From Salpingoeca rosetta (lineage: Eukaryota; Protista; Choanoflagellata): 64,000 nucleotides of DNA. The stretch is taken from assembly GCA_033442325.1 (NCBI GenBank), contig JAWQFM010000029.1, positions 276,966 through 340,965 of the forward strand. The letters are read 5' to 3'. The notes beneath the pieces were generated by a model. That model was given only the letters and a program-made list of their open reading frames with translations. It did no database searches and was not told where the DNA came from. Shown one piece after another: positions 5,196 through 18,892 of the stretch; positions within the stretch are counted from its first letter, which is position 1; each line of letters opens with the position of its first letter. A program made the position numbers and the translations under genes.

Positions 5196-6566
5196 ATGAG
5201 CGTGCATGTGAGTGCTCAAGGTCAAGGACCACCGCAGCAGCGACGACTGCCCCTGATGCTGGTCCTTGTTGTTGGTGTCGTAATCAGTGCTTTGATGATC
5301 CAGCCGCATGCTGGGGTTTGTGCGCAAGCGCCACCCCAAGCACCAGCGCTGAAGCGCCCGTCCATCACGCGTGACAGCCAAGGTGCCATGCACGTGAACA
5401 CAAGCGACCCAATGCGCGAGCCTGTGTATGTCAACGGGGTCGATGTGTACGGCACCTTGAGCGAGCAGCATCGCGTGATTGCCACTCAGCAGGAGCTCAT
5501 TGATCGCCAAGCAAGCCTGAATCAAGTGCTGCGAAGTACAGTTTCGGCACAGCAGGCTGCAATGAATGCGCTTGAGGCGCAGGTATGCTGGCTGAGGCGC
5601 CCGTTGGCCAGCACCACCACCATCGCCGGCTTGGGAACAGGGTATGAAAAGTATTTCGGCGCGGTCCTTGCCAACAACGGTCTCATCTACGGCATCCCCC
5701 ACACCGCCACCTCCATTCTCGTCGTGGACCCAAGCACCAACAGCGCCAGCACGACCCTGTTTCCTCAGCGGTTTCCAGAACCGAGAAAATGGGCGGATGG
5801 CGTGCTCGCAAACACCGGTCTCATCTACGGCATCCCGTCGCAGTCCAGCGTCGTGCTTATCATCGATCCAGCCATCAACACAGCCGACACCACCAGCATC
5901 ATGGGCCTTGGCTCTGAGCCAGACAAGTGGCACGGCGGTGTTCTGGCCCACAACGGCAAAATCTATGCCGTCCCATATCATTCGCACGCCGTTTTGATCA
6001 TTGATCCCGACACGAACACGGCAGACATCACCAGCATCAAGTCACTGTTTGGTATGTACAAGTGGTCGGGCGGCGTGCTTGCAGGCAACGGCCTCATCTA
6101 CTGCGTTCCCTTCAATGCCCAGCGCGTGCTGATCATCAATCCAGACACCAATACCGCCGACAAGACCACCATACCTGACTTGGAACCCCGCCTGCAGTTC
6201 TCTGGTGCTGTCCTGGCTAACAACGGCCTCATCTATGGTATTCCCCTCCTCGCCGATGACGTGCTCATGATCGACCCCGCAACCAACGCTGTTGACACAA
6301 TCAGCATCACGGGCCTCGTCCCTGCCACCGCAAAGTGGTATGGCGGCGTGCTGGCTCCGAACGGTCAGATTGTCGGCTTTCCCAACCTCGCAGAGACCAT
6401 CCTCATCATCGACCCCGCCACCAACAGCGCCACCACTAACACTAGCTTCCCCCTCTTCAACCCAAGCCTCACAAAGTGGCGCGGTGGTGCTGTTGCCCCC
6501 AGTGGCCTCATCTATGGCATGCCTTATCTCGAGCAGTCTGTCCTCATTATTGACCTGGGTTGCTAA
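5196..6566 (+). CDS. Intronless secreted protein: signal peptide + cubilin-N-like beta module + coiled coil + 7-bladed beta-propeller (KWxGGVLAxNGxIYxIP repeats)
   Basis: Uninterrupted ORF, ATG at 5196; hydrophobic LMLVLVVGVVISALMI; heptad segment LSEQHRVIATQQELIDRQASLNQVLRSTVSAQQAAMNALEAQV; seven ~46-aa repeats ending LIIDPxTNTA. Confidence 0.9.
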   Translation: MSVHVSAQGQGPPQQRRLPLMLVLVVGVVISALMIQPHAGVCAQAPPQAPALKRPSITRDSQGAMHVNTSDPMREPVYVNGVDVYGTLSEQHRVIATQQELIDRQASLNQVLRSTVSAQQAAMNALEAQVCWLRRPLASTTTIAGLGTGYEKYFGAVLANNGLIYGIPHTATSILVVDPSTNSASTTLFPQRFPEPRKWADGVLANTGLIYGIPSQSSVVLIIDPAINTADTTSIMGLGSEPDKWHGGVLAHNGKIYAVPYHSHAVLIIDPDTNTADITSIKSLFGMYKWSGGVLAGNGLIYCVPFNAQRVLIINPDTNTADKTTIPDLEPRLQFSGAVLANNGLIYGIPLLADDVLMIDPATNAVDTISITGLVPATAKWYGGVLAPNGQIVGFPNLAETILIIDPATNSATTNTSFPLFNPSLTKWRGGAVAPSGLIYGMPYLEQSVLIIDLGC

Positions 6567-7452
6567 GGGTGGAAGTCCGTGTGCGTGCATGTGTAGAAAC
6601 TTGCGGATGCATAGCGCTTGTGTGCAGAGTCTGAATGTGTGCGTGGTCTGTGAATGTGTGCGTAGCCTGTGTATGTGCGTAGCTTTTGGGTGGGTGTTTC
6701 TTTGGAGTGGGTGTTTCTTTGGAATGCGAATCTAGTGTACGAGCATCCGCACGTTGTCCTTGTCGTTTGGCGCGCGCTTGTCTTGCAGATGTTGCCTTGT
6801 GTAACATGTACCCTCGCATCGCGTCACAGCCCTTGTCGCACCTCTGTGTGGCAATCACCGATCCTTTGCTCCCCTGTCTTTAGCTTTGTGTGTGTGTGTG
6901 TGTGTGTGTGTGTGTGTGTGTGTGTGTGTGTGTGTGTGTGTGTGTGCGTTTGTGTTGTGTGTGTGCGTATGTGTGCGTTTGTGTTGTGTGTGTATGTGTG
7001 TGCCTGCCTGCCTGTTTGTCTGTCGCCGCGCGTGTTGGTATGCTGAGGTTGGTTTCACCCTTTGGTTTCATCCTTTGCCACTCACGACAGTAAAACTGAA
7101 GAGAAACTCGAAGTTTATGGCAATGCAGCAATTGCGGGGGGGGGGGGCAAACAGATCTACGGCATCATGGCGCCACCACCACTTGCTCACCAGGCTCGGT
7201 GCAAGCACTCAACATCCCACACACACACACACACACACACATCAGACCAGACACGTTAAGGAACACGAAAGTCCTCAAGCAAATCGGAACGGTGACAAGA
7301 GGACAGAACTTTTGTAACTTCGCAACAGCAGCGTGTGCGACGACACACACCCAACACACACACGCACGCACACACACAGACACACACACACACAGACACA
7401 CACACACACACAGACACACACAGACACACACACACACACACAATATCTATTC

Positions 7453-16978: not shown

Positions 16979-17335
16979 CAACCCCAGACACAAACGCAAC
17001 ACCCTGAATTCAGCCGCAGTCTCATTCGCAGCCCTTGACGATCTTCCTTGGTCCTTTTCGCACGCACTCGAGGCACAACAAGGCGAACAAAGAAATTTGT
17101 GTTTGGCTTCACAGTGCACCCACCCACTTTCAACCACACCTCTTTCTTTGTTGTCCGTTTGTCTCTTTGTCCTTGCCCTCGTCTTCTCGTCGAGACACCA
17201 CGCGATCGTTCTTGGCTTCGCTCGTCGAGTTCCCAAGCCCCCCTGTTCCATTTCTTCTTCTTCCAAGCGCTCAAGCAAGCAAGCACTTCTCACTGTCAGT
17301 CTCCTCCCCCCTTCCAGCCTTCCCGCACCGCCACC

Positions 17336-18892
17336 ATGTCCTGCGCTGTCCTCGGCATGTTTGCGGTCTGTGCTGTCCTCCTGTTGACTGTGGCCACGAC
17401 CGCATGCTTTGGTTTGGGCGCCAGCGACGCTCCGAAGCTGTTCAGCGACAAGTACGGCAACCTGCACGTGTCCACGTTTGGGGACCAGCGCGTCTTCGTC
17501 AACGACATTGACCTGTCGCAGCTGAGCCATGTCCTGGAAGAGACGCGCCGGTGCACGCTCGACGGGTCAGCCTTCGACCGAAACGCCAGCACCACGAGCA
17601 CGGACGACGGCGTCCAGCGCACGGCTCGCGTGTGGTCCGCCAAGCAGCTGAATGTGACAACCGCCAGCAGCCGCATCAACGACATCTCCTATGACCCCAC
17701 CACCAACTCCATTGTGGCGGCGGGCCACACGGAGGGGTTCGTGTTCCGCGAGTCGCAGGGCGGCAAGGACATGCTCGTGTTCAAGATGAGCCTGGACACG
17801 CCCGAGGCAGAGATGCTGTGGGCGCAGCAGATTGGATGGGCGCACGACGACGAGGCTCGTGGCGTCGTGTTTGATCCGCGCTACAACGGCGTTTACGTTG
17901 TCGGTGTCTCTGATAGCCAAACGTTCACGGGGCACACAGACGATTCGTCTTACCCTGGCATGGCCTTCATCGTTGATGGCGAAACTGGCACTGTGCTGGG
18001 CACCAACCAGCGATTGCAGTTCACCACAATCAATGCCGTGACTGTGGCGCACGATTTAAATGATCAGAGTAGGGTGTTGCCATCATTTGTGGGTTGCATC
18101 GCGACCGCAAGTACAATTGCGTTCTTTTCGTACATTTCAGAGAAAGCACCCAGACGGACTCGCTTTGGCAGCCCGAGCGCTGCGGACCTGTTGGCAGTCG
18201 CCCGGCCCATTGGCAACTCCGACGACATCCTGTTTGCTGCTGGCTGGTCAGCCACAACGTATTTTGGTGAGCTGTATGGCATGACGGATGTACTCATCGC
18301 CAAGGGAACGAGAGACAACCCAAACGATCCGCCGTACACGTGGGGAGTGCACGTTGGCACGCCAGGTTTTGATCGTGCAGAGGCGGTTGCAGTGAACGGC
18401 AGCAGCACAGACGTCGTCTATGTTGCAGGCTACACGCGAGGGGCGTTTCCCAACAACGACAACCAGGGTCGTGACGACGCGTTTGTGCTTGCATTTGACG
18501 CAAGCAACGTAGACTCAACGCCCATCACCGGCAACGACCGTCTCCTGTGGTGCACGCAGTTTGGAACAGAGCACATTGACCGCGCCCACGCCATGGTGTA
18601 CGACGCGCAGAGCGAGCTGCTATACGTTGCAGGGTTCACGGATGGGTCGCTGCACGGAAACATGCGGGAGGGCACGCGCGACCTGTTTGTGACGGCCGTG
18701 TCACCGGTGGATGGCGGCATTGTGTGGACGCTCCAAGATGGTGTTGCAGGCATGAAGGCACACGCGCTGTCACTGGAGGTGCTTGATGGCGGCGAGACGT
18801 TGGCTGTGGGTGGATATGTCAGCACCCAAGGCGCATCGGGTCTTGCTCGCGAACAAGGCTTTGTCGTCACCTACAAGATCACGACAGACTGA
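17336..18892 (+). CDS. Intronless secreted protein: signal peptide + cubilin-N-like module + SBBP-type beta-propeller
   Basis: GCCACCATG start context; hydrophobic N-terminus; repeats such as VYVAGYTRGAFPNNDNQGRDDAFVLAFD...LWCTQFGTEHIDRAHAMVYD and LYVAGFTDGSLHGNMREGTRDLFV, which match the SBBP propeller pattern of bacterial surface proteins. Confidence 0.88.
   Translation: MSCAVLGMFAVCAVLLLTVATTACFGLGASDAPKLFSDKYGNLHVSTFGDQRVFVNDIDLSQLSHVLEETRRCTLDGSAFDRNASTTSTDDGVQRTARVWSAKQLNVTTASSRINDISYDPTTNSIVAAGHTEGFVFRESQGGKDMLVFKMSLDTPEAEMLWAQQIGWAHDDEARGVVFDPRYNGVYVVGVSDSQTFTGHTDDSSYPGMAFIVDGETGTVLGTNQRLQFTTINAVTVAHDLNDQSRVLPSFVGCIATASTIAFFSYISEKAPRRTRFGSPSAADLLAVARPIGNSDDILFAAGWSATTYFGELYGMTDVLIAKGTRDNPNDPPYTWGVHVGTPGFDRAEAVAVNGSSTDVVYVAGYTRGAFPNNDNQGRDDAFVLAFDASNVDSTPITGNDRLLWCTQFGTEHIDRAHAMVYDAQSELLYVAGFTDGSLHGNMREGTRDLFVTAVSPVDGGIVWTLQDGVAGMKAHALSLEVLDGGETLAVGGYVSTQGASGLAREQGFVVTYKITTD

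Follow-up and report, generated by a model that had tools for sequence, protein, structure and literature searches.

What is the meaning of a short segment shared by two secreted proteins whose remaining parts are unrelated? The question is raised by a stretch of 64,000 nucleotides of the genome of the choanoflagellate Salpingoeca rosetta (positions 276,966–340,965 of contig JAWQFM010000029.1, assembly GCA_033442325.1), here called the window, in which two genes, gene 2 and gene 5, each encode a signal-peptide-like region, a module of about 30 residues and a C-terminal β-propeller of a different family. No living organisms are closer to animals than choanoflagellates, which live by recognizing and capturing bacteria. 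We find the module in a large gene family and consider it likely that the two genes represent a choanoflagellate-restricted stalk-and-head system of secreted proteins, which would assemble into oligomeric fibres and provide a repertoire for recognition or adhesion. An initial annotation of the window had noticed the same two segments and linked them to the N terminus of animal cubilin, a proposal that we weigh below.

Results

Two propeller genes with a common N-terminal module

Gene 2 (5196–6566, forward strand) is a continuous open frame of 456 amino acids for a predicted secreted, stalked propeller protein. Its residues 1–45 (5196–5330) form a signal-peptide-like region, read by eye from the sequence as a hydrophobic core followed by A-Q-A; Met21, at 5256, may be the true start. 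The module occupies residues 54–84 (5355–5447) and includes an N-T-S sequon (5394–5402). It leads into a predicted coiled-coil stalk (5445–5588), which terminates at a conserved cysteine, Cys131, and which AlphaFold2 (AF2) models as a helix with a predicted local distance difference test (pLDDT) score of 93–99. The head (5610–6563) is a propeller of the DUF6923/DUF5074 type with seven units of the form KW-GGVLA-NGLIYG-P ... VLIIDP-TNT, and passes the Pfam cut-offs for both DUF5074 (PF16819; 42.4 bits, cut-off 27.2) and DUF6923 (PF21959; 35.9 bits, cut-off 27). Gene 2 is transcribed: strand-specific RNA sequencing (RNA-seq) reads span the whole frame, on one strand only, and reveal no genuine splice junction.

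Gene 5 (17336–18892, forward strand; 518 amino acids from the first plausible Met) follows the same order with different parts. A hydrophobic signal-peptide-like region, again read by eye (residues 1–29, 17336–17422), precedes a module of the GNLH subtype without a sequon (residues 32–60, 17429–17515), a short helical segment that ends at Cys73 (17516–17554) and a head of SBBP-type β-propeller repeats (17633–18889; Pfam SBBP, PF06739, 23.5 bits against a cut-off of 20.5). Translation of 5355–5447 and 17429–17515 reproduces exactly the two peptides quoted in the initial annotation, and in both genes the motif lies where it was placed, a few residues past the hydrophobic signal-like segment. The propellers were rightly called unrelated, as the C-terminal parts match each other only at a BLASTP E value of 0.81 and belong to different Pfam families.

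A module family in the S. rosetta genome

The N-terminal regions of genes 2 and 5 match by BLASTP with an E value of 6e-5 over 55 residues, of which 17 are identical. That figure alone would leave room for a chance or compositional match between unrelated secreted proteins, but a profile built from just these two segments, a check proposed in the initial annotation, finds at least 139 places in the 55.4-Mb S. rosetta genome, the majority of them open frames of 400–600 amino acids. The module of gene 2 scores 62.6 bits against a profile made without gene 2. For gene 5, which was excluded from both profiles used, the score is 17.8 bits (E=1e-3) with the main family and 28.3 bits (E=5e-7) with a broader set, both E values being at proteome scale. 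Judged by these profile scores, gene 5 is a divergent member of the family. The combination of module and SBBP head also recurs elsewhere, in a second S. rosetta gene at C16:1174855 and in the public proteins P0140 and P0169, the last an environmental protein whose repeats match those of gene 5 with a BLASTP E value of 1e-16. At the level of sequence, we regard the chance explanation as already refuted and accord it practically no probability.

Family alignments give a conserved core of D-x2-G-x-L-H-I-N-T-S-D-P-x3-P-V-F-V-N-G-V-D-V, in which the invariant or near-invariant columns are D, G, H, N-T-S, V, N-G and V. The proline that leads the consensus drawn up in the initial annotation is not conserved across these members. 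Within the module, 27 of 29 S. rosetta members have an N-x-S/T sequon, and a broader set has one at the matching position in 52 of 74 cases; gene 5 has none. Such conservation points either to a conserved N-glycan on the fibre tip or to a structural asparagine.

The 2.5-Mb contig C4 alone has 47 of the genomic matches and C25 has 17. In several cases two family members stand head to head with a few hundred bases between them. Four loci (L006, L007, L008 and L009, on C1, C15, C17 and C4, respectively) are near-identical copies of one member, with open frames of 183–192 amino acids that break inside the first blade. A public model, P0077 (386 amino acids), joins both parts of a member of this type, which suggests an intron in this subfamily.

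The module has no Pfam family, and Pfam scans at E≤10 returned nothing consistent for it. A PHROGs scan of module and stalk together gave coiled-coil noise only; an Atlas feature search yielded nothing usable for the N terminus of gene 2 and, for gene 5, only leads scoring below 0.9 to phage tail-fibre clusters; and full-text literature searches found no paper describing the module family.

Heads and distribution of the family

We read the heads of 59 family genes. The gene-2-type propeller is present in 55 of these, at 31–50% identity, and the remainder carry SBBP repeats (gene 5), a receptor-L/leucine-rich-repeat-like solenoid with a Cys-rich end (three copies) or a Ser/Thr-rich mucin-like tail. 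Genome-wide, the gene-2-type propeller has 207 matches and the SBBP head of the gene 5 type is found at about nine paralogous loci.

Among 1.84 billion representative proteins, a profile search found only 71 clusters at E≤1e-3, and eight at E≤1e-10. Behind the module, public proteins carry SBBP, DUF6923, Kelch, FG-GAP, PQQ, Recep_L, TNFR_c6 and Gly-rich heads; SBBP is the Pfam family in 3 of 41 module-bearing public proteins, with a best E value of 5.5e-41. For PTSG_09713, named a fibrinogen-C-domain protein by UniRef, Pfam finds no domain. The joining of the module to variable heads, as the initial annotation had it, is therefore borne out by at least ten head types. The position of the module is also variable. 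In one protein of 960 amino acids it lies in mid-chain, downstream of a weak N-terminal TSP1 match that falls below the cut-off, and some proteins contain two or three copies in tandem, each followed by its own helix.

All named sources fall in one choanoflagellate clade, comprising S. rosetta, Microstomoeca roanoka and Barroeca monosierra, with the rest of the matches on environmental contigs; the named homologues from a word search of public proteins are S. rosetta PTSG proteins. The presence of the family in a unicellular relative of animals, part of the original proposal, is in agreement with these sources.

The distribution of the gene-2-type head is different when it is taken by itself. 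Bacterial DUF6923/DUF5074 proteins match the propeller of gene 2 at 45–55% identity over about 68–70% of the query, in the propeller part only. These relatives come from Spirochaetota and Leptospiraceae, one of them on a 4.8-Mb contig of Spirochaetaceae. Given these bacterial relatives and the mostly intronless S. rosetta genes, an old gene transfer is a possible origin of this head.

These combinations would be explained if an N-terminal unit had been reused with many heads by domain shuffling and if, in S. rosetta, the combination with a seven-bladed DUF6923-type propeller had given rise to arrays that hold more than 100 genes, most of them intronless. Such an expansion fits a diversified extracellular repertoire for recognition or adhesion.

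A predicted oligomeric stalk of heptad-locked length

We modelled residues 50–136 of gene 2, spanning the module and stalk, in three copies together with three controls. The score was 0.84 for the three-copy model and at most 0.21 for the controls; a score of 0.84 is reached by 21 of 30 solved one-chain pairs and by none of 23 solved single chains, counts that are only rough here because the calibration was made on two copies. Contact agreement among the three-copy runs was at least 98% and the pLDDT of the partner at least 87. The predicted interchain contacts are heptad-spaced, occurring every three to four residues along residues 84–134, and extend into the module, where the strands touch the neighbouring chain through residues 62–82 (for example, 78–80 with 66–67). 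As an AF2 monomer, in the numbering of the N-terminal model, the fragment has strands at 3–6 and 12–15 and a helix of about 50 residues at 31–80, with a mean pLDDT of 89.7.

Comparison of paralogues reveals a rule for the length of the stalk. The distance from the invariant Asn of the N-G pair to the cysteine at the end of the stalk ranges from 23 to 121 residues, yet its remainder on division by seven is 2 or 5 in 13 of 15 distinct lengths, the fairer count, and in 37 of 39 paralogues. Gene 2, with a distance of 51, has remainder 2. The same two classes dominate in environmental relatives. Stalk length thus changes in whole heptads, and some of these increments arise from tandem Q-Q-S-x-I-D-A units (for example, L005:1417–1659 and L048:2597–3055). 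A spacing of three or four residues between the two classes is expected if they correspond to core positions a and d of a single unbroken heptad register. We therefore take the module to fix the register and place the cysteine in the core, where interchain disulphides would be possible.

Together, these data are consistent with the following architecture. A signal peptide would be followed by the module of about 30 residues, an α-helical heptad stalk of variable length, usually terminated by a cysteine, and a C-terminal binding head. The short β strands of the module would pair across chains and thereby set the register of the parallel coiled coil behind them, for which three strands are the most likely number, and the cysteine at a core position near the end of the stalk would be able to cross-link the chains. 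The product would be a multivalent fibre in which several identical heads are borne on an N-terminal cap and stalk.

It is conceivable that the coiled coil alone oligomerizes and that the module serves as a processing, sorting or glycosylation tag. Its usual place immediately behind the signal peptide and the recurrence of the N-x-S/T sequon at one site would suit such a role. However, the module is also found internally and in tandem with its own helix after each copy, its distance to the cysteine is heptad-locked, which implies structural coupling, and the three-copy model puts its strands in interchain contact. We judge a tag to be quite improbable.

An oligomerizing stalk with swappable heads is accordingly the reading that we consider well supported, and several points weigh against it. 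The survey of heads covers 59 genes, as against 139 matches in the genome. Because paralogues are not independent, the proportion of 37 of 39 overstates the length rule. A complex predictor calibrated on two copies cannot tell dimer, trimer and tetramer apart. In gene 5, the Asn-to-Cys distance is 17 (remainder 3), far below the main family, and only about 12 helical residues precede the cysteine, which makes its oligomerization less certain than that of gene 2. Finally, family membership, modularity, the quantized stalk length and the transcription of gene 2 are observed, whereas the number of chains, the disulphide and a role in recognition are points that we infer. Two proposals of the initial annotation are affected by these considerations. 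A helical or coiled-coil stretch behind the module holds for gene 2, whereas in gene 5 it is a short helix and not a long coiled coil. As to the proposed trimerization, self-association is predicted for the stalk, whose length is heptad-locked in the main family, and three is the most likely number of chains.

Comparison with cubilin and amnionless

The N-terminal domain of cubilin is a three-chain, three-turn intertwined β-helix with an N-terminal hairpin, followed by a coiled coil (PMC6283879), and cubilin docks on amnionless through residues 42–49 (PMC6283879). Were the module a true homologue of this β-helix, the S. rosetta proteins might be anchored by amnionless-like membrane proteins, as receptors of the cubam type that arose before animals. 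For comparison we used residues 17–71 of chain 6GJE_B, a segment confirmed by PDB search.

The resemblance starts with position and order: as predicted for the module proteins, signal and β strands precede a coiled coil in cubilin, where it has three chains (PMC6283879). Some sequence likeness accompanies it. Gene 5 matches cubilin residues 42–96 with a BLASTP E value of 0.002, a score attained by 2 of 5,000 shuffles, and two stretches of cubilin, GNL..T and ND.DL with the helix, align in the same order with the family profile. This likeness does not extend to the family. Family profiles (A2 and A4) miss 6GJE_B in the PDB at E≤10; when aligned with it, profiles score 1.8–2.3 bits, values matched by 18–20 of 2,000 shuffles (about 1%), and hhalign returns probabilities of 7% and 25%, the latter over 20 columns. 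Gene 2 does not rise above shuffles, so that the likeness belongs to one member of about 140. A phmmer search with the N terminus of gene 5 found no match in the PDB at E≤10.

Structural comparison gives a similar picture. In a Foldseek search with the monomer model, 6GJE_B ranks fifth of 350,542 chains, though with an E value of 4, and VIA-align superposes residues 6–75 of the model on cubilin 53–121 with a Z score of 4.1 and a root-mean-square deviation of 5.8 Å over 67 aligned residues. The structural offset, as deduced from the aligned ranges, would put the Asn of the module near Asn74 of cubilin, as does the sequence alignment. Such values are nevertheless within the range of noise for a hairpin and a long helix, and NadA scores higher (Z 5.0). 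The module is also shorter than its cubilin counterpart by about one β turn (10–13 residues). Pfam finds no EGF or CUB domain in either of the two genes or in the members sampled, and no listed module protein exceeds 960 amino acids, so no protein of the size of cubilin was found.

A six-frame search of the genome for amnionless (PF14828), which genes with small exons can escape, gave one match, whose 20.3 bits fall short of the cut-off of 30.4. We rejected this candidate (C4:287518–287889, within locus L051, C4:286018–289389) as Asn/Tyr low-complexity sequence beside aldehyde-dehydrogenase-like exons. The amnionless homologue that the initial annotation wished to see searched for has thus produced a low-complexity artefact only, and its description of the module as cubilin-N-like, if meant as kinship, is not supported, the family profiles having retrieved no cubilin from the PDB at E≤10.

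We conclude that the module resembles the cubilin N terminus in the outline of its working, and that membership in the same family is not supported. Homology with the cubilin β-helix, together with anchoring by amnionless-like proteins, appears unlikely to us. We are similarly doubtful, and a shade more so, that the module is the pre-animal counterpart of the amnionless-docking β-helix, with more than 100 trimeric heads displayed on amnionless-like anchors.

Gene models and neighbouring sequence

Apparent joints in RNA-seq reads over gene 2 were rejected as introns; they carry extra letters and stem from reads of paralogues on the conserved propeller repeats. At 100% identity, gene 2 is absent from a word search of public proteins, in which its best S. 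rosetta match has 46% identity, and the ESM Atlas contains it letter for letter. It is possible that the public gene set of S. rosetta lacks gene 2. For gene 5, the public model is P0128 (494 amino acids), which matches our reading except for the absence of 24 propeller residues that the continuous frame of the genome contains; this deficit looks as if it came from a predicted intron.

Three runs of N occur in the window, one of which lies between the two genes: an intergenic assembly gap at 16766–16865, with a (CA)n microsatellite on both flanks. As the gap is outside both genes, 470 nucleotides upstream of the ATG of gene 5, continuity across it is irrelevant to either frame.

Immediately upstream of gene 2, at 4713–5189, an (ACC)n-type repeat reads as a poly-Thr/Pro open frame. 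We rejected it as a mucin gene, for it is a microsatellite comparable to the many intergenic (CA)n tracts. Between genes 2 and 5, a long open frame on the reverse strand (8000–12037) combines leucine-rich repeats with a single transmembrane segment and a protein-kinase domain, the last broken by an in-frame (TG)n stretch that is probably an intron. The product resembles a receptor kinase and shows no evident tie to the module family.

Discussion

The arrangement of an assembly region, a coiled coil and heads is already known from collectins, ficolins, cubilin and bacterial and viral fibres. The module itself is lineage-specific, without a Pfam family and without a significant sequence or fold match in the PDB, and comparison with the known systems brings out both its likeness and its separateness.

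Collectins, ficolins, angiopoietins and tenascins similarly have an assembly region at the N terminus, then a coiled-coil neck, and present identical recognition heads in several copies at the C terminus. The S. rosetta proteins lack a C-type lectin head and any sequence relation to these proteins, so the comparison is one of analogy; in genes 2 and 5 there is also no run of collagen-like Gly-X-Y in the sequence and no Pfam collagen match. Cubilin (human residues 36–131; 6GJE) is close in plan, with β strands behind the leader and a three-chain coiled coil that bears ligand-binding domains, and its fold class is similar to that predicted for the module. It differs in that EGF and CUB domains follow, where the S. 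rosetta family carries propellers and other heads; in that the stalk of the main S. rosetta family is locked in length to a terminal cysteine; and in that local likeness is weak and confined to gene 5 (GNL..T and ND.DLS), with no sequence signal at the level of the family.

The best structural neighbours of the N-terminal model, weak as they are, include NadA, reovirus sigma1, phage endosialidase and a YadA-like Atlas cluster. The trimeric autotransporter adhesins NadA and YadA and the phage and reovirus fibres place trimeric β elements on coiled coils that carry heads, in the manner proposed here, but they have no sequence similarity to the module and all of these matches are non-significant. 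The bacterial DUF6923/DUF5074 propellers, some of them labelled 'streptogramin lyase', provide a likeness of the opposite kind: their head is like that of gene 2, whereas the module and stalk are unmatched, and several carry Ig-like or other domains.

If the link with cubilin were true after all, the design of the cubam receptor would be older than animals, part of a modular receptor system that predates them. On the reading that we prefer, an oligomerizing stalk with swappable heads, a module found on at least ten kinds of head and in more than 100 genes would be this lineage's own counterpart to animal oligomeric recognition proteins such as collectins, ficolins and cubilin. Its heptad-locked stalk provides a simple structural rule that can be tested. 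Genetic tools exist for S. rosetta, and the family would therefore offer a tractable system in which to study how repertoires for multivalent extracellular recognition arise by domain shuffling.

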